DNA of 64,000 nucleotides from Magallana gigas (taxonomy: Eukaryota). The notes under the pieces were generated by a model that saw nothing but the letters and a program-made list of their open reading frames with translations, ran no database searches and had not been told where the DNA came from. Both the position numbers and the translations under genes were made by a program. Position 1 is the first letter of the stretch; each line of letters opens with the position of its first letter. Shown in pieces: positions 38,784 through 49,614 of the stretch. The stretch spans positions 29,698,001 to 29,762,000 of the forward strand of contig NC_088861.1 in NCBI RefSeq assembly GCF_963853765.1, in the 5' to 3' direction.

Positions 38784-39608
38784 GTCTCACCTGAATAAAT
38801 AAAACAGAAGGCATTTCAAAAGGACAGCACAGTCTTTTTTTTAATTAAAAATGAGATTTTTTCAAATTATCTTTTTCAAAATACAGTCATACATGCATTA
38901 CATATATGGAAGCAAACTATAATTTAATAGTAAAATATTTAGCTCAAACTAAATGACTGGTTTTTGTCATGAACATGATAAAGGTTACAAAATTTGCATA
39001 ATAATATGAGCATGAAGTTGACACATGTTATATCACATAACCTCATAAAGGCAATAATTTACCACTTCTGACATTCTGATGCTAAACCAAAATAATGATT
39101 TGAAAAAATTTCTTTCTGCAAATTTGAGTTTCACCCAAAAATGGATTTGTGTTCAAACAGAAAAGAAACAATTGGTTCAAAGGTGCAGCAGTCAGCTGCC
39201 ACTGAAGCAACAAGTGTTGCTGAATCAAGGTTGCACTGCTCACCCACAAAAAGCCACAGATAACCATAAGGAACCACATCTGTTTATAAACAACAGGAAA
39301 GGTCACTTGAGATGTTTTTAAGTAAAAGAGTCACATCCTAAATAATAATTTGACAGCAATTCTTGAACCTCTGAGGCAAGCTTTGCTGCACCTGAACATT
39401 TCATTCTGTCAAAATTCAGCAGCCATTTTGAAAGCCATGTCTGTTTTAGCAAAATTTTGTCAACAACTATCAATTTCAACAATAACATACACAAAGGTAT
39501 GAATTCTTGTATGGAAAATGATACTCTGTAAAATAGCACAGGACTATTAACACACACAAAAAGCAAATAATGTTGTATGTAAAAAGCATAATTATAAAAA
39601 ATTCTGAC

Positions 39609-40133: not shown

Positions 40134-41831
40134 GCAGCCAGTGGCATCTCATGATCAAGGATATCTTTGAGCTCTATTGGTCAATCTTAGCAAGATTACC
40201 AAATGAATATTACATATCGTAAATTTCAATTTTCTGGTGGATGTATTACAAATATACTTAGTCTAATAACTCAAAATTTCCTGTTTTATTCAGACAGAAA
40301 ACAATTTTGAATCATAAGAGACAAATTCTTTTATAAACAGCAGTAATTGTGTATGAATGTACACATTGCATAAAACATTTGGAAAGAAAAATAAAACAAA
40401 GAAAGATGGACAGGTAAACATAAACTCAACAGAGAAGTCATCAATCAAGAAAGTATATGGATGTCTTATGAGCAATGGTTCATCGGCAAAAAGATTCATC
40501 ATAGCCTGGCAGCTGTGTAATGACTGAGTCAAATCCAGTCAATGATTATATCATATTACCTATAGCTAGCTCATCTTGACCATTTATTAAAGCTTATCTT
40601 TGCAATTGGACATCTGGACAGCAGATGACCGAGACTCAGTATATTCATGCATCCATAGTTAATATTGAATAAAATGTTACGAATGAGAGGCAACACAACA
40701 AATGTTGGAATGTTTAACTTATAAATTTTACCAGCCCCCCCCCCCCCCCTCCCCCCCCCCCAAAAAAAAAAATAAAATAAATCATACCTGTAATAATGTG
40801 TCTGTCTTTTCATACAACATGTATTGAATGACAATTAAATATGTACTATGCTGTGACAGTAAATGTATTCCAAGATTTTAACACTCTAGCAGGGATACAG
40901 AGTTGCAACATACAGTATGAAATCTATATGAAACTGATTAAGCAATTAAATTTACATCATTTATTGATTGTCTACTCACAACCCCCCTCCCTCAAATGTT
41001 TACTGGTTTTGGAATTGAATTTGGGAAAGTTATAACTAATGTTCATCTAAAATGGGTGGTAAGTCTCATTGGTATCAAGGCCAACTTTCACTTACATAGT
41101 CAAGGTGAACTTTTAACAAACTCAAATTGCAACACGCAGTACATATAGTTACAGGTATAAAGACTATATTGCTGTGCAAACTCTGCAATGATAATACATG
41201 TACAACCATCTATAATTATTCCACAAAACTGATCAACATTTCATTTTCCACCCTACATGTGGGAAGCAAAAATGTTACAGGTATTTTTGGGAGCATGTAT
41301 ATGTAATATACAAATAAAAAGGCAAATTTTATTTTTCCTCTATTAAATTAAACAGTGAGATTTCATTCATAAATGTTCTTCCATGATCAGAATTGAAGAA
41401 AAAATGCTTGGTTTCTCAATTTCATTATTAGAGACACAAATATAAATAATATATTAAGCTTTTAATTGGATCCACTCACAGATTTACCATTATATTAAAA
41501 CAGGAGAAGAAAGAAATCTTACTTTTCAATTTGTTTCTATGTCATACAACCTATTTGAAAACAATTATGCAAAAAATGAGTGAATTTTTCTCAATCTACA
41601 TGTAACTAATACTGTGCAAAATGAGAAATTTCAACAAACTCCGCTTTCTTAAATTTTAAATGTCAAAATTAATTAACATTAACTGTCTACCATTTAGTTA
41701 CTGAACATCTTGATATTCGTAGCACTAAATGTATGAAACTGTTTATGTCTTTAAAGATAGTCATTGTTCCGATGGCAAGTATTACACAAATGTGTTAAGT
41801 CAGACTTAATCAAAGAAATGTCTAATTTTCC

Positions 41832-44800
41832 TTACAGATTATACAGACGACAAGTGTTGGACACAGTGATGTGAGCAATGCTGTCCAGAGAGTCATTACG
41901 AATGGTCGCCACGGCAGACGCCACTTCTCCCAGAAACAAAGGACTGTTCTCCAGGATACCTTGTTCCTCTCCAACCAGCACCACATCTGACTCCAGCAGC
42001 AGACGGTCATCTGGAACCGCGCGAAGTCCTTTCATTTGTTGCTCGTCAAAGTCCAAAACTCTTCTGGTAAATCCGAAATAGCAGTTTGGAAAATCTTCCA
42101 GCCATTCTCTAACCATGACCTCCCCACCTTTGAAATTGCAAAGATGGATGTGTTGCTCTGGACTACAATGCCGTCTGACAAGGTCGCGTACTCTTGACCC
42201 CACATCGAAACTGTAAGGGTCTCCATGGGGACCAGTGACCTTCAAAATCATTGGTTGGGCCGGTGTGCTGAGGGTCAGAAGCTGTCTAAATTTCATTTCT
42301 TGTTCCATCCATAGCTCCTTGTCTCCTGATCTATCCAAACCAATGTCGCCGAATGCAGCGTCTGCGCTATTGGTCAGAACACTCACTGCCTCAAACTCTT
42401 CCTGCAGAAGGCCAGGGGCAGCCGAAGCATCGACTCCAAAACAATTCCTCCACCCAGGATAGTTGGGAAAACCTCCCAAGGCAAAGGACTTCGGGTTGCT
42501 ATATACTACAGTGCCACCTATGATGTCAACTGGTACGTTTGGTCGAGCATGAACGGCTAAATTTGACAGCAGTTCAGAGGGATTGATTTCCGAGACATTG
42601 AACATCATACACAAACGTCCGAAGTAGAAATGGCTGTCCATTAAAGATATTCTCTGTGGAAGCCGTGGTTCTTTAAAAGGTATGGGCAACACCTGCCTAT
42701 CAAAGTCTGGAGGAGGTGTTTTTCTACGATACCCCTCCAATTCCTGATGAGACAGGCTGTATTCCTGGTCTCTATATTCAGGGAAATCCCTATCATCATT
42801 GAAAGCAGTGTTAAAATTCCTTGTTTCCTCTTCATACCCTTGATTACCATAGTTAAAATCCTCTTCTAAGCTCCTGCTGGTCTGCTGGACATTTTCGGCT
42901 TTTTTTCCCACCAAATTCAATCCTTTCTGATGGGGATTTTTCACGTCTTCTAGACTTAGACCATTAATAGTGGCTTTAGCAAATGAGGATTTGAACAGCT
43001 TCTGAAAACGGACTGACACATATTTCAAGAGGCCCAGTAGGGCTCTCCAGTGGAGAAGAATAGCTGGACTATTTGGTGGCCAAATGGAAAACTGGTGAGG
43101 TATCTGCAGCCCTTGGTGCTGACATAGAGCCCTCATGCTGACCTCCATGGATGGTGTGATTTTAGCCTCCTGAGGCATGATGTTTTTGCTTCTGAAAAAC
43201 TCCAACAGATCCTCAATATGCGCATCAGGACTAAGTACAAAGGTGGTTAAATTTCGCAGACTTTTCCATCGCATGCTGTGGAGATTAGGATCAGAAATTG
43301 GAAGATCCACATCGAATATTTTTGGGAGGTGAAATTTGTAGGCATGGTCTTTTAAATCCGTTGTCTGAAAACAATTCGGCACAGGACAAGTGGTGAGAGC
43401 ATTAAGTCTCTTAATCTGACGATCGATTCTACGGGCTTCATAATTCTTCTTTATCTTTCTCTGCCCTTTCCTTTCTCTTCTTTTTCTCTTTTTCTGAGCT
43501 ATTCGTCTCCTTTTTCGCACTTGAGAACTGGACAAACCTCTGTTGCGTAAATTTGAGGCAACACTGTTTTGCTGTTCCTCTTCTTCAGTTTCACTGTGAC
43601 TACAAGATGAGACATCCTCGTCTAGATCTTTCTTTGAACCAACTGTTTGAAACAAAGGCTCTTGCTCTACTCCTCCACCTGTTCGACGAGTTTGCTCGTA
43701 ATCAAAAACTCTGATTTGATCAGATCCCATATCTGGATTGATATCATGATATGAATTTGAGCCTCTGCTACTGTGAAAACCTTTAGCCTGATTTTCAAAA
43801 GTTTTAAACCTTGACTCTCTGCTCTCTTCAGTTTGAGAGATACTAAATGACTGAGATGGAAAGGGTGCCATAGTCTGCTGCATATTTTGCCCCCTTTGTT
43901 GCTGCATATTTTGTTGCCCTTGTTGCTGCATATTTTGTTGCCCTTGTTGCTGCATATTTTGTTGGCCTTGTTGCTGTTGCTTTGTGTTCTTTAATAATTC
44001 CCATTCAAATTCCAGCCCCTCTGCATGGAAAAGATTTCGGAATTCCCCTCGCTGAACAGGAGTGATGTACTGCAGCAGACAAGACAGGGCTTTCCAGTGA
44101 AGCAGTAATGCTGGACTGTTGACAGTATGAAGAACAAAAACCTCTGGTTCACTGTATCCATAGTGACGGCAAAACGCCCTGAACGACTCGTCCATTTTGT
44201 CTGAGATGGGCATGCCCTGAGGAAGGACATTCTGGTTCCTTAAAAATCTACACAGGTCATCAAGATTTGAAGTGTTCCCCAGAATAGACATTGTTAATTC
44301 TTTCAAGGCTCGCATGCGCAGTTCATGCAAGGCAGGATTATCCACAGAGAAACTCGTGTTAAAAATTTTTGGGAGGTGACATTTCATCATGTGTTCCTTG
44401 TTACTGCCAACTTTCTCATGGCAATCTGACAAAGAGCACTTTTTATAATTCTTATTCAATGTCTTTGAATTATTCATACTTTGTGACCCATTAGACTGTT
44501 GTGAACTGTTGCCAATATTAGGTTTTCTTGTGTTTTGGATATTGCTTGACAATGTATTCTTCTGCTGAGAGGCCTGTACATGTTCATGCCTTTTGCCAAC
44601 ATACATCGCTTGACTGGTCCCTGATTGGCCAGTTTGTGACCTTTGACTTGCACAGCTGAACACAGGCTGGTGAGAACTTTGAACAGTTGAAGGCTGCATA
44701 GACTGAGATCTTGGTTGGTCTCCTAGATATCCCTGCTGATGACTCTGATAAATGTTGTCTGGCTTCTGTCCCAATAACCCAGTTCTACCTGACGAAATAT

Positions 44801-45353
44801 TTCCTCTTCCTTGCCCCCACTGTGTTTGCTGGAACATCTGACTTCTTTGCCCATGGTTCTGTGGATTAATCCCCAGAATGGCACCACCTTGGCCTTGTAG
44901 ATTAGCCATCACACCTGCACCACCAACTCTTGGAAACCTTGGTGCCTGCTGGTTTGGTCCTCGGTTCATTGTGTTAAAATCTTGTTGACTTGGCTCTGGC
45001 ACAGCATGGGATGGTCTAGTGTATGCAGGAATTCCAGGTCTGGGGTTCTCAAATCTGGTACCATATCCATAGGCTGGTTGGGATGATACTGTGTTTGGTC
45101 CAGGACCTGCATTCAATGAGTTTTGCTGATGGAATCCCAAACTGCCTTGATGTTGATGATAGGCTTGCAGCGATTGGTTAGAATAGGTCATGTGATGCTG
45201 TCCTTGGTTGGGATTAGGAACACTCTGCCTAGAGCTATGATAGGATGGATTCACCACTGAGGCGTTCAGAACACCAACCCTCTTAGAGTTTGGATACTGC
45301 TGTCTCACATTGGGAACACTGTGTGTATATTGCATATAGTTTCTATCCATCAT
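41832..45353 (-). CDS. Intronless 1,173-aa protein: Q/N/G/S-rich disordered region, two Cys2/His2-type repeats, basic tract, C-terminal degenerate TatD-like nuclease fold
   Basis: Uninterrupted 3.5-kb ORF; TatD motifs recognisable as DSHFY, GDIGLDR, IHLCNF, WLEDFPNCYFGF, VPDDRLLLESD, NTCRLY; internal duplication C-x4-C...H-x4-HLPKIF...SPA-LLHW-AL. Confidence 0.85.
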   Translation of the reverse strand: MMDRNYMQYTHSVPNVRQQYPNSKRVGVLNASVVNPSYHSSRQSVPNPNQGQHHMTYSNQSLQAYHQHQGSLGFHQQNSLNAGPGPNTVSSQPAYGYGTRFENPRPGIPAYTRPSHAVPEPSQQDFNTMNRGPNQQAPRFPRVGGAGVMANLQGQGGAILGINPQNHGQRSQMFQQTQWGQGRGNISSGRTGLLGQKPDNIYQSHQQGYLGDQPRSQSMQPSTVQSSHQPVFSCASQRSQTGQSGTSQAMYVGKRHEHVQASQQKNTLSSNIQNTRKPNIGNSSQQSNGSQSMNNSKTLNKNYKKCSLSDCHEKVGSNKEHMMKCHLPKIFNTSFSVDNPALHELRMRALKELTMSILGNTSNLDDLCRFLRNQNVLPQGMPISDKMDESFRAFCRHYGYSEPEVFVLHTVNSPALLLHWKALSCLLQYITPVQRGEFRNLFHAEGLEFEWELLKNTKQQQQGQQNMQQQGQQNMQQQGQQNMQQQRGQNMQQTMAPFPSQSFSISQTEESRESRFKTFENQAKGFHSSRGSNSYHDINPDMGSDQIRVFDYEQTRRTGGGVEQEPLFQTVGSKKDLDEDVSSCSHSETEEEEQQNSVASNLRNRGLSSSQVRKRRRIAQKKRKRRERKGQRKIKKNYEARRIDRQIKRLNALTTCPVPNCFQTTDLKDHAYKFHLPKIFDVDLPISDPNLHSMRWKSLRNLTTFVLSPDAHIEDLLEFFRSKNIMPQEAKITPSMEVSMRALCQHQGLQIPHQFSIWPPNSPAILLHWRALLGLLKYVSVRFQKLFKSSFAKATINGLSLEDVKNPHQKGLNLVGKKAENVQQTSRSLEEDFNYGNQGYEEETRNFNTAFNDDRDFPEYRDQEYSLSHQELEGYRRKTPPPDFDRQVLPIPFKEPRLPQRISLMDSHFYFGRLCMMFNVSEINPSELLSNLAVHARPNVPVDIIGGTVVYSNPKSFALGGFPNYPGWRNCFGVDASAAPGLLQEEFEAVSVLTNSADAAFGDIGLDRSGDKELWMEQEMKFRQLLTLSTPAQPMILKVTGPHGDPYSFDVGSRVRDLVRRHCSPEQHIHLCNFKGGEVMVREWLEDFPNCYFGFTRRVLDFDEQQMKGLRAVPDDRLLLESDVVLVGEEQGILENSPLFLGEVASAVATIRNDSLDSIAHITVSNTCRLYNL

Positions 45354-45499
45354 TATGTCTTTTGATTATTTCACCAATCACCAGTTCTTATTTGCAGAGG
45401 ACAGTAAAATGTTTAAGAATGGCATAAATTTACTTATTGCTCAAAACTGCTTGTTATCAGCTTTTGGTTAATTTAACATTCAGTAGGTAAGAATCCTAC

Positions 45500-45562
45500 C
45501 TTTATCTGTAAAATGTCCCACCGGCTAGTTGGGAAACTTTACTGCTTCTCTCAAATTGATCA
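45500..45562 (-). other. Putative non-coding 5' exon
   Basis: Pyrimidine-rich acceptor cctttttatttttag| and donor AAG|gtagga; 113-nt intron to a candidate acceptor at 45387 ahead of the TatD-like ATG. Confidence 0.5.
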
Positions 45563-46030
45563 CTAAAAATAAAAAGGATGAGAATGAAGTACATGTATCT
45601 GATCTATAGTACCATCATTCCAACATAAAAAAAAAACCACACACACAAAGGAGAAACAGATGTTGCTTGCAATCAATGTTAAATATCACCAGTGAAACTT
45701 CCATCAAGGGATATTAGGATAAGAGACAAAGCACATAATCAGTTTTATCAGTCAATATCAGCCAGTTAATCGAAATATTTTCTCTTGACATTCAAAGCTA
45801 ATATAAAAATAAAAATTTCAATAATAAATAAAAATTCAGCTTATTCAAACATATTCTTGTATAAAATATTTTTTGAAATATAATTCTAGTATAGTGATTA
45901 AATCATGTACAGGCAATTCATCAATTTTTTGGTGTAAATGACCCATAATTTCAGTCCTAGCTTGAATCAACGAAAAAGAAAATGGTCCTGTAAAACACGG
46001 CAACAAATCTAGCCCAGTAAATACACATAC

Positions 46031-46100
46031 CGGCAGAGAGAATATCTTCATTTGAAAGGCACGTACTTGCAACAGAGTTTTCATTTTCATACCTTAAATC
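46031..46100 (-). other. Putative first exon (start approximate)
   Basis: Donor CCG|gtatgt at 46030; CpG dinucleotides become visibly more frequent upstream (>46.3 kb). Confidence 0.35.
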
Positions 46101-49100
46101 TCGTTATTAATAATTTTTTTTTTCTAGTAAATTTTTTAATCGGTAACTCAGTCCCATGTCAAAACGTTATTACACTCTTGTAAAAAAATACTTGGGCTCA
46201 GTTTGATAAATAATTTAATATTATACATTAGATGTTAACTTTTATTTCATATGTTCAATAGTTATCATGGTTATATCATGTAACACATCAAATATTAATA
46301 ACAACAAACTCCATACACCCTATCATAAAAATAATTAAACTTTGCAACTAGATCCTTTACCGCGTATATGGACCCATGCAGGTTCTGCTTTCCATCACTT
46401 TAAGGTGAATTAGAAAAAAAAAACTTTTCATTTTAGAAAGACTGAAATCAATGAAAAAAAATATGTCTTCTACAAGGACATGTTATCTGAAGGTATTGAC
46501 AAAAACGAAAACAATATTCTATAAAACGGATTTACAATGGGAAAACACTCTAGTCTATAACCATTTCAATGAGTTGGATCAAGCAAATTTATATAAAATC
46601 ACACAATTATAGATGTTCCATTTATCTCATACAGTTTGTTTAATATTATGAAGCTTTTGAGACCGCCCCTTTTTTTGACCCGAATGTATTTGTTTCAAAG
46701 ATTAAACTATGATGCAACGTTGTGTTATGCGGTTATTGTGACCATGCGCAATACAATATAGTGTGTCATTTCAGAGATAAATATAACTGATTTAATGTAA
46801 AGTTTTACTAAACTAAATCTTGAAACAATTTTTTATTTTAAAATATTTTTCTTGAAGTTCAATCACTAAATTAAATGAAAATACTGATCAGAACAAGTTT
46901 GAATGTTTCAAAATTTAATCTTACAATTAAGGGTGCAATGATAAACTGTCAGACAGTATATCACGGTAAAAATATGCTATGGTTCAATGTCATGATACAG
47001 TAAGCTATACCGCGGTTCAGTATTTCGATCTGGAATATATTTATCCCTCCGATACGGATTGAAAATATTTTTTTTTTTAAATGGCTTCTGGTTTTGAAAA
47101 ACGTGCTTCGCACTATTTAATTTTGCCCCCTGCTACAGTGCATCTCATAACTCTTCGATATGGTAACATTTTTCGTTTTGTGGGATAAACGAAATTGGTT
47201 AATAACAAAGTTCCCAAATTGAGGGTTTCTACATGCAAGTAGTTTAGTACCTTTTTCAGACGATTTTCCTACGCGGGCATGTTAAGGCTTCCCGATGCGA
47301 CATGTAGAAAGTCACTTGTCTGTACTTCATACGATATGACGTCATAATTAACTTTGACGTCATGATCTGCATTCCTGTCGATAGTTCTCAGGGAATGTAT
47401 CTTAACGTTAAAAGTGAATTATATCAAACCAGTATAATACCGCATGTTTCCTTTATATAGATGCTGCAGTTAATTCTAGACGTACAGAATTCATTCATAT
47501 AAAAAACCAGTATCAAATAATCGGCAGTTTTAAAGCTTCGTTTTAAGTAAAAGACTATTTATAAACTAGTGGTTTGGAAACTCTCCCTGCTACGTGTAAA
47601 CAACTGAATGAAGAAATTTTAATGCATGTAAAACCAGCTTGGCGCAGGTGAAAGATCAACACAATTTTAGAATATTTTACGTAAAATTGGTAGAGAATAT
47701 AAGTACCAATGTGAATCGTGCTGCGGAAACCTACGGATTTACCCCAATTCTGTGTAAATCGCTTTTGATTAGTAAAAATGTGCATTATTTTGATGATTTT
47801 GTGGAATGTTTCAACAATATCTTCTATAAACGAAATATCTATTTCTTTCCCAAGCAAGAACTTCAAAGTTTATGACTTAACAAAGGATTTTTCTTAAAAA
47901 TATGTATGATTTAATGTCATTAATCACCTGCGCCGATGCGTTTTAACTAGATCATTTGCAATATTAGGATTCGCCTGTCACGTGATTATGAATTACATGT
48001 GACGTCACAAAAATGCATCAAATATAATGTTTAACATCGATGTCAATAAATGTAACATAGATTTAAAGAAATACTCCCGGTAAAATTATTTTTGCCATGA
48101 TTCAAATAATATCGTTTTCCAGCCGTATTTTAGCATCGGGACGCCTTAACAATGCTGCGTACAAACAAACGACATGTGTATTGCACCTCGTATAAAACAG
48201 CATTTATCCATACATTTGTCTGTTGTCACAAGAAATTAATGCCACTTTCCTAGATGTGCAAAAAATTAAATTAAAGGTCACCCTAGTCATTAAATATTTT
48301 GTCTTCAGAAAATTCATTACATCTATATAAATAAGAGCATAAATAATTTGATTGTTGTCAGTGTTGAAATAACGATATTGATGCCAACATTATATTTTAC
48401 CTTATGCAGATCATGTTGACATTCTGATATTTATACAGCTGATTAAGAAAAAATATGTGGAAAAAAAATATGTAACTAAAAGCTGGAGATTAAACAATAT
48501 CAAAATATGCGTAATTTGTTTATTTATTATTTTTAAAAGCACATCAAAATCATCACGATACATATCGTATCATATTGTCTGTATCATGATACATATCGTA
48601 TCGTGAGGCAAGTGTTTCGTTGCACCCCTACTTACAATAATATATATATCTAAAAACAAACGATGTTTATAACTGTGCTCATGCTCCCTGAAAAGACTTA
48701 GTGTGTTATAGGAAATTGAACATCACAGATTTTCCAATGCAAACATAAGAGGAAATGTATACACTGAATGTAAATATTTAATACATAATGTATATTTTGT
48801 ATATATTTTTTAGGTGGTGAAAAAATGACGAAACCATACCCTGGTGAGAAATAGTCTTACGCCAGTACACTTTTACCATATTATATTTATTTGCCATAAA
48901 AATTAAATAACAATATTTTTCATGATTTTGGGAAGCTAAAGAGAAGCACACTAAAAAGTCAATATTATCATGATTACTGAACACGATGAACTATATGAAA
49001 GATGGCATTAGCACACACATGTCCAATTTAATGTATAGTTTAAATTGATACATACATTGATTGTTTTTTCCCCAATGACTTTTATGATTTCCCCCCTTTT

Positions 49101-49614
49101 TCCAAGAGTCCCTTTTTAAAAACTCAGAAAATGCACGAGGCCTACTTGCATTGCACGAGTGAGCACTACGAATAAGGGACTAACAAAGTATCTTTCAACA
49201 AAACACAATGCAGCAATTACCACAGTGATATCGCTGATATACACCGGCATCTTATCAACCACAGTCTTTGATAATAACAGATAATTGTAATAAGGGGATA
49301 AACTAGAAATCTACATCTCCGTCTTAGCTTTATCTCTACTTCCGAGAATTTAATAGGTCAAACGCGTCACATTACTGAAATGAAAGTGAAATTAACATGT
49401 CATAAACAATCACTTTACACTTACTTTTAACGATATGCGCAGTATCAAGCTTTATTCCAACAGATACTTAAACACAAGTACTGTTGTTATTTGACCCTTT
49501 CTGCCTTTCGTCATTTTCACATTTCGCACAGAATAGAACAACGATCCCGACTCGTAAAGAAATTCGAGCCCGATTCTATTTAAAACCGATTGGGAATAAG
49601 TACAGGATTCGAAG

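Follow-up and report, generated by a model that had tools for sequence, protein, structure and literature searches.

A zinc-module and TatD-fold gene in the VPS13D leader intron

We analyzed 64,000 nucleotides from Magallana gigas (contig NC_088861.1, positions 29,698,001 to 29,762,000; C9:29698001-29762000 in our genome searches), hereafter the window. Its minus strand contains a long single-exon open reading frame (ORF; 41832..45353) that encodes two CCHH zinc-knuckle modules followed by a TatD-fold domain, nested in an intron of VPS13D. As developed below, this gene is most likely a domesticated accessory-ORF gene of a Ty3/Gypsy retrotransposon. The initial annotation had described an intact frame of 1,173 aa, and we indeed find 1,173 codons plus a stop with no interruption. 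GC content over the ORF is 0.40-0.44, against about 0.33 in the surrounding sequence.

All features of the protein are encoded on the minus strand. Residues 1-300 (44454..45353) form a Q/S/G/N-rich, low-complexity N-terminus, recognized by composition. It evolves fast, with a ratio of nonsynonymous to synonymous substitution rates (dN/dS) of 0.27-0.47, and 26 of its 300 columns are invariant among five orthologues, one of them a partial protein. The first CCHH zinc-knuckle and all-alpha module (aa 301-445; 44019..44453) reads CSLSDC...HMMKCHLPKIF...NSPALLLHW (dN/dS 0.04-0.21). The second (aa 651-795; 42969..43403) reads CPVPNC...HAYKFHLPKIF...NSPAILLHW and is delimited by alignment, an AlphaFold2 (AF2) model and dN/dS (0.05-0.18). 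Just before the second module lies an Arg/Lys cluster (aa 612-640; 43434..43520), kept in 6/6 orthologues, that looks like a nuclear localization signal. The TatD-fold (beta/alpha)8 domain (aa 901-1173; 41835..42653) is defined by Pfam, AF2, Foldseek, its ligand pattern (HYDDKCED) and its dN/dS. A 24-nt tandem repeat coding for QQQGQQNM units occupies 43876..43995. One RNA contig lacks 48 nt inside this repeat (43918-43965); since the ends of the missing segment read CC..GG, the gap is no intron but a polymorphism in repeat number.

The C-terminal domain adopts a predicted TatD barrel

The only Pfam domain found in the protein is TatD_DNase (PF01026), which matches aa 983-1172 with 51.2 bits (cutoff 27). 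A single-sequence search of the PDB with the domain reached only the C-terminal third of YcfH (E 9e-4), and a family-alignment profile was therefore needed. This profile matches 16 solved TatD, YcfH and TATDN chains, the best being S. aureus TatD and E. coli YcfH (E about 5e-22, lowest value 4.6e-22). An AF2 model of aa 891-1173 (predicted local distance difference test, pLDDT, 88.7; predicted template modeling score, pTM, 0.88) alternates strands and helices as in a (beta/alpha)8 barrel. Foldseek against the PDB placed TatD-family structures in all top 17 positions, with S. aureus TatD (6l25) first (E 1e-14; template modeling scores, TM, 0.72/0.80). Both the profile score and the structural comparison thus agree with the TatD fold proposed in the initial annotation, and the predicted structure is an amidohydrolase-type TatD barrel.

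The barrel and the strand positions of the ligands are common to the window domain and the bacterial Mg2+-dependent TatD/YcfH nucleases (6L25/2GZX; YcfH, 1YIX; E. coli TatD, 4P5U), although its identity to solved TatD structures is only 15-20%. The window domain also keeps their first His and the strand-8 E-x-D motif. It differs from them in four of the five His ligands, in a bridging Glu changed to Asp, in altered second-shell residues, and in being fused to 900 aa with two CCHH modules and low-complexity sequence. Eukaryotic TATDN1 and TATDN3 (2XIO, 8EFG, 2Y1H) have the TatD fold in common with the window domain and are matched by profile and structure, but the bacterial YcfH type is closer to the window family (E 5e-22, against 1e-9 to 2e-12). 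Unlike the window protein, they are stand-alone enzymes; 8EFG holds two zinc ions according to its entry title.

The metal site is rewritten around a conserved acidic core

The six altered TatD motifs read earlier are all found in the window sequence: DSHFY (aa 906-910), GVDA (973-976), GDIGLD (1002-1007), ILKVTG (1036-1041), HLCNF (1070-1074) and LESDVV (1120-1125). We assigned ligand positions by alignment to 97 canonical members of the family, with S. aureus TatD numbering. In this alignment H6, H8, H63, E92, H128, H153, E202 and D204 of S. aureus TatD correspond to H908, Y910, D975, D1003, K1038, C1072, E1121 and D1123 of the window protein. The site therefore reads H-Y-D-D-K-C-E-D in place of the canonical H-H-H-E-H-H-E-D, and in the AF2 model the substituted residues terminate predicted strands 1, 3, 4, 5, 6 and 8, the usual places for ligands in amidohydrolase-type barrels (the C-terminal strand ends). 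The earlier statement that most metal ligands are lost stands for the His cluster (HxH of strand 1, the GxHP His, and the His of strands 5 and 6): four of its five His are replaced and H908 alone is kept, in six orthologues alike. It does not extend to the acidic set, in which E1121 and D1123 of the ETD motif are retained and the GExGLD Glu is conservatively replaced by Asp1003. Judged by its residues, the pocket would be more acidic and less imidazole-rich than the canonical one, not empty or hydrophobic.

We surveyed ligand patterns in 161 family proteins from two databases. HHHEHHED is read in 99 of them, and most of the others are fragments or one-position variants. HYDDKCED is restricted to the window protein and five orthologue entries. 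Of 44 columns that reach 85% conservation or more in the 97 canonical members, 29 are unchanged in the oyster clade and 15 are altered, 13 of them within or adjacent to the ligand motifs. The altered residues include the Asp after HxH, the GxHP Pro (Pro976 to Ala), the LHxR Arg (to Thr), the HCF Cys, and Thr, Pro and Tyr around ETD. Because the changes center on the ligand motifs and 29 conserved columns are kept, the structural signature of the fold is retained and the active-site shell has been specifically rewritten.

The gene is conserved in three oyster genera and its barrel is the most constrained part

A word-indexed protein search returned full-length orthologues with 97%, 94%, 68% and 64% identity and a partial one with 69%. 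The full-length proteins measure 1,102-1,159 aa, and all have a single-exon coding sequence. Named members are LOC133176619 of Saccostrea echinata and LOC130052597 of Ostrea edulis, the latter in the 64% cluster. The HYDDKCED pattern is found in 6/6 orthologues across three oyster genera (Crassostrea-like, Saccostrea echinata and Ostrea edulis). The genomes of both named species carry a VPS13 gene 2.4-4.8 kb downstream of the orthologue and in the same orientation, which is also the order in the window (VPS13D). A search of the Magallana gigas genome (564 Mb, 29 contigs) found one locus of this gene type.

We estimated dN/dS per region by the Nei-Gojobori method. Inter-genus dS is saturated under this method (1.5-3, some values undefined), and we therefore put weight on three unsaturated pairs, in which dN/dS of the TatD domain is 0.024 (dS 0.14), 0.067 (dS 0.30) and 0.11 (dS 0.99). 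In the saturated inter-genus pairs it is 0.05-0.10. The two CCHH modules give 0.04-0.21, and the Q-rich N-terminus and linkers mostly 0.23-0.8, the linkers alone 0.3-0.8, with one low-dS pair at 2.4 in linker 2; values for the whole gene are 0.11-0.32. As a control we used a solo paralogue on contig C8 with an intact site, whose TatD domain has a dN/dS of 0.166 in the same species pair that gives 0.067 for the window gene. The altered barrel, with the lowest dN/dS in the protein and a value below that of the C8 paralogue, is thus the most constrained part of the protein, more so than the barrel of the intact-site paralogue.

Constraint extends to the substituted positions. All eight ligand positions (8/8) are invariant among six orthologues, compared to 170 of 273 domain columns (62%); the chance of such invariance is about 2% if ligand positions behaved like the average column. 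The oyster clade is recovered with 100% support in maximum-likelihood (ML) trees; its stem measures 1.1-1.2 substitutions per site and no inner branch exceeds 0.16, and this combination of a long stem and short inner branches indicates a burst of substitution followed by stasis. The initial annotation had proposed that the protein is kept under selection and that dN/dS among oyster orthologues would bear on this. Orthologues with identical substitutions in three genera, synteny with VPS13D, a TatD-domain dN/dS of 0.02-0.11, far below 1, and sense transcription (see below) bear out that proposal, and purifying selection on the gene is strongly supported. We reject a chance ORF or a decaying copy on the strength of the orthologues and dN/dS.

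The protein family is carried by Ty3/Gypsy elements

The genome holds at least 20 TatD-like matches. Full-length relatives are 33-37% identical to the window protein in the domain and keep every canonical motif. They have in common an upstream module, C-x4-C ... H-x4-H-LP.IF ... NSPA.L.HW, of which the window protein has two copies. In two cases the family ORF follows, after about 0.1-0.4 kb, an ORF with reverse transcriptase (RT), RNase H, integrase and PHD-finger domains. A tblastn comparison of one such pol and its TatD ORF with 10-kb stretches around other matches recovered the pol-then-TatD order at L023 (C10:1490000-1499999), L024, L032-L035, L037 (C7:2407000-2416999), L038 and L039, and remnants of it at L030 and L031. 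Two further contigs, one from Saccostrea cucullata (L020) and one from SRA (L022), show the same order. At the protein level L037 is 90-94% identical to L023, which points to a young copy and a recently active family. We conclude that in this genome the zinc-finger (ZnF) module plus TatD protein is mostly the 3'-most ORF of a Ty3/Gypsy retrotransposon lineage with intact motifs. An exhaustive HMMER search collected 844 representatives at 50% identity, with scores that drop from about 860 bits for two orthologue representatives to 220 bits.

The window gene shows no sign of an accompanying element. Neither the 64-kb window nor the sequence within 10 kb of the two orthologous loci (Saccostrea echinata, Ostrea edulis) shows similarity to pol, and the 10.6-kb intron around the ORF contains no LTR-like direct repeat (LTR, long terminal repeat). 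In tblastn the element protein matches the window protein from residue 242 onward, and thus the element-type N-terminal domain is absent. In the third ORF of the oyster Gypsy elements (L023, L024, L037) the same CCHH module precedes the TatD domain without introns, with 27-37% identity over module and domain. This element ORF keeps HHHEHHED and has one module behind a different N-terminal domain, whereas the window gene has a rebuilt site, two modules and a Q-rich region. It also sits about 0.4 kb behind pol and in multiple copies, some 90-94% identical, whereas the window gene is solo and syntenic.

The CCHH module itself is well conserved: an alignment of 22 modules shows no variation at C, C, H, H and P, and the window copies span aa 306-420 and 656-769. 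Copies 1 and 2 are 33% identical. The AF2 model (pLDDT 91) packs a short CCHH knuckle on an all-alpha domain, for which we found no PDB match (Foldseek E >1; VIA-align Z <=3.5 over 48,161 chains). A feature search of the ESM Atlas gave scores of at most 0.84, with weak C2H2-like hints. The modeled CCHH-plus-helical module may therefore be an undescribed domain common to hundreds of retroelement ORFs.

The ORF is transcribed within a VPS13D intron

Of the sequencing runs that contain the stretch, nine, from four studies (P1, P4, P5, P9), are recorded as RNA. We mapped raw reads of three stranded polyA libraries and one contig set against 41050-47000. Over 41647-45626 the first mate lies on the plus strand throughout, corresponding to minus-strand RNA in usual stranded protocols. 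The transcription that the initial annotation had made a check of its proposal is therefore present: the ORF is covered in sense by all three libraries, and RNA contigs tile it. Depth is low because about 1% of each run was sampled. Across the neighboring intron (45627-46422) depth is zero, which disfavors a plain pre-mRNA signal.

Loose ends of the raw RNA reads, together with AG/GT borders, define a 65-nt 5' untranslated region (5'UTR) exon of VPS13D at 45498..45562 on the minus strand. It is joined upstream to an exon ending at 49425 and downstream to the VPS13D start-codon exon beginning at 38788, with the VPS13 reading frame translated from 38783 downwards. Because RNA splices join 49425, 45498-45562 and 38788, the TatD-like ORF is nested in a same-strand 5'UTR intron of VPS13D, the 10.6-kb intron mentioned above. 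The ORF mRNA may share the VPS13D leader exons through donor read-through. The ORF starts 145 nt downstream of the splice donor of the 65-nt exon.

Other solo and site-eroded members of the family

Solo copies with intact TatD motifs are present in the same genome on contigs C5 (L002/L026, C5:57037070-57039187) and C8 (L004, C8:16275443-16277623); their 10-12 kb of upstream sequence contains neither a pol ORF nor pol similarity. The C8 copy has an 86-95% identical counterpart in related oysters. With its related-oyster counterpart and a TatD dN/dS of 0.17, it may be a second domesticated copy, in this case with intact catalytic motifs.

Outside the oysters, Pinctada imbricata (L043, 10001-13378) carries a solo single-exon gene of 1,125 aa with the ligand set FNHTHHEG, and Batillaria attramentaria (L044, 10001-13828) one of 1,275 aa with HYNDSCES. 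Neither pol nor VPS13 is found within 10 kb of these two loci. Further long, solo, single-exon relatives read HYNDYHEN (two modules) and HYHDHHED. The oyster clade might share ancestry with the Batillaria-type or the Pinctada-type proteins. An LG+G4 tree joins the oyster and Batillaria clades with a Shimodaira-Hasegawa-like approximate likelihood ratio test (SH-aLRT) value of 94, but C20 mixture trees do not, and approximately unbiased (AU) tests reject neither grouping (p 0.55, 0.54). Long-branch attraction is likely. Recurrent and independent domestication with erosion of the site is possible for Pinctada and Batillaria.

Origin and function of the oyster gene

Taken as a whole, the data are best explained, in our judgment and with a fair share of doubt, by an element-derived host gene with a rewritten site that now has a non-canonical role. 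A solo copy would have reached fixation immediately upstream of the exon with the VPS13D start codon before the Ostreidae radiated. This radiation took place about 100 million years or more ago, and the saturated inter-genus dS is consistent with such a deep split. The fixed copy would then have duplicated its CCHH module and swapped the element-type N-terminal domain for the Q-rich low-complexity region. During the substitution burst the active-site shell would have been rewritten, with four of the five His changed to Tyr, Asp, Lys and Cys and the bridging Glu to Asp, and with Pro, Arg, Cys and Tyr lost at flanking positions. From then on, the barrel would have been under tighter constraint than any other part of the protein.

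Domesticated retroelement genes are known from Gag-derived genes of the PEG10/Arc type and from Drosophila Gagr. Like the window gene, these are single-copy, intronless, syntenic and constrained host genes derived from an ORF of an LTR retroelement. They differ in their source, which for the window gene would be an accessory nuclease ORF and not gag, pol or env, and in that the catalytic site would here have been rewritten during domestication.

The same relationships could be read in reverse, with a ZnF-TatD gene ancestral to the host, one such gene captured by retrotransposons, and the window gene as a diverged host paralogue. We consider this improbable. In its favor, deep branches of the family tree are weakly supported, and solo intact-site copies without pol do exist on C5 (L002/L026/L041) and C8 (L004/L025/L040). 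However, most copies in this genome and those of Saccostrea cucullata sit behind a pol ORF, every family ORF examined is intronless, the 844 representatives at 50% identity are typical of mobile elements, and the window clade branches within element-bearing clades, on a long derived stem. We give far less credence to the ORF being what is left of a decaying retrotransposon or a recent pseudogene, long by chance and seen in RNA only as VPS13D intronic pre-mRNA. Its position inside a same-strand VPS13D intron and the many broken element copies with stops among its relatives in the genome fit such a remnant. Full-length syntenic orthologues in three genera, with dS >1.5 and a domain dN/dS of 0.05-0.1, do not, and neither does zero depth in the neighboring intron while three libraries cover the ORF.

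For the biochemistry, a competing explanation is that the domain is still an active hydrolase, its His-rich transition-metal site having become a carboxylate-rich site of the Mg2+ or Ca2+ type with a changed preference for metal or substrate. Its ligands would be D975, D1003, E1121 and D1123 together with H908, and the strong constraint would reflect catalysis. In E. coli TatD the H64A, H127A and H152A mutants are active and H62A is reduced, whereas E91A, E201A and D203A are inactive (PMC4176340); in S. aureus TatD all five His-to-Ala mutants and D204A are active, loss of activity being confined to E92A and E202A (PMC7201278). In the window protein the residues equivalent to E202 and D204 are retained, that of E92 is Asp, and a further Asp stands at the H63 position; its eight ligand positions are invariant, and the domain has the lowest dN/dS in the protein. 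These points favor an altered hydrolase. On the other hand, four His are replaced together with second-shell Pro976, the LHxR Arg, and the two residues, Pro and Tyr, that follow ETD. Across the family the canonical ligands are near-universal (HHHEHHED in 99/161), the H62A mutant of E. coli TatD has reduced activity (PMC4176340), and Glu to Asp shortens the bridging ligand. None of the solved structures matched by the profile is an active TatD with the window ligand set. We regard an altered hydrolase as a real but lesser possibility. Our somewhat stronger expectation from the residues is that canonical nuclease chemistry has been lost and that the pocket now serves binding, and a pseudo-nuclease identity of the domain is plausible.

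Several points weigh against the explanation that we favor, an element-derived host gene with a non-canonical role. Bacterial TatDs with single His-to-Ala changes stay active, and the essential acidic residues are kept or conservatively replaced here (PMC4176340, PMC7201278); in light of this mutagenesis, we infer catalytic loss in the window protein rather than observe it. The replacement residues Tyr, Asp, Asp, Lys and Cys can all bind metals or phosphate. The element-to-host direction is drawn from parsimony and from a nesting of the window clade among element-borne sequences that receives only 82-93 SH-aLRT, the deep nodes being weakly supported. RNA depth is low, and the ORF lies within a same-strand VPS13D intron.

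For the oyster gene, a job in the host other than ordinary DNA cutting is probable. Our best guess is that the barrel would no longer perform canonical His-cluster two-metal hydrolysis, and that its retained acidic and polar pocket would instead accommodate a phosphate or the end of a nucleic acid. Both zinc modules, with the conserved basic cluster, would direct the barrel to a nuclear nucleic-acid or protein partner.

Implications for TatD proteins and marine-invertebrate retroelements

Precedents exist for inactive or remodeled enzyme folds and for the domestication of transposon genes. The likely retroelement origin is the main addition to the initial annotation. Our literature searches, the last of which was loose and covered its top 20 hits, found no paper that connects TatD with pseudoenzymes, LTR retrotransposons, gypsy or a retrocopy-derived function. 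One genome here offers a before-and-after pair, the element-borne HHHEHHED and the host HYDDKCED, the latter fixed across three oyster genera. This pair raises the question of what role a TatD barrel has after loss of its His cluster. It also raises the question of what purpose a TatD ORF serves in marine-invertebrate retroelements, and whether a host copy interferes with them.

One speculative answer, to which we assign a low likelihood, is that the window gene acts in the host as a restriction factor built from the element's own nuclease. By analogy with Gag-derived restriction factors, the altered copy with its doubled targeting modules might compete with or poison the active ZnF-TatD protein of the TatD-carrying Gypsy elements that are still young in this genome. 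If this were true, the site-eroded solo copies of the pearl oyster and the gastropod would suggest that this element gene has been domesticated repeatedly, perhaps by convergence.

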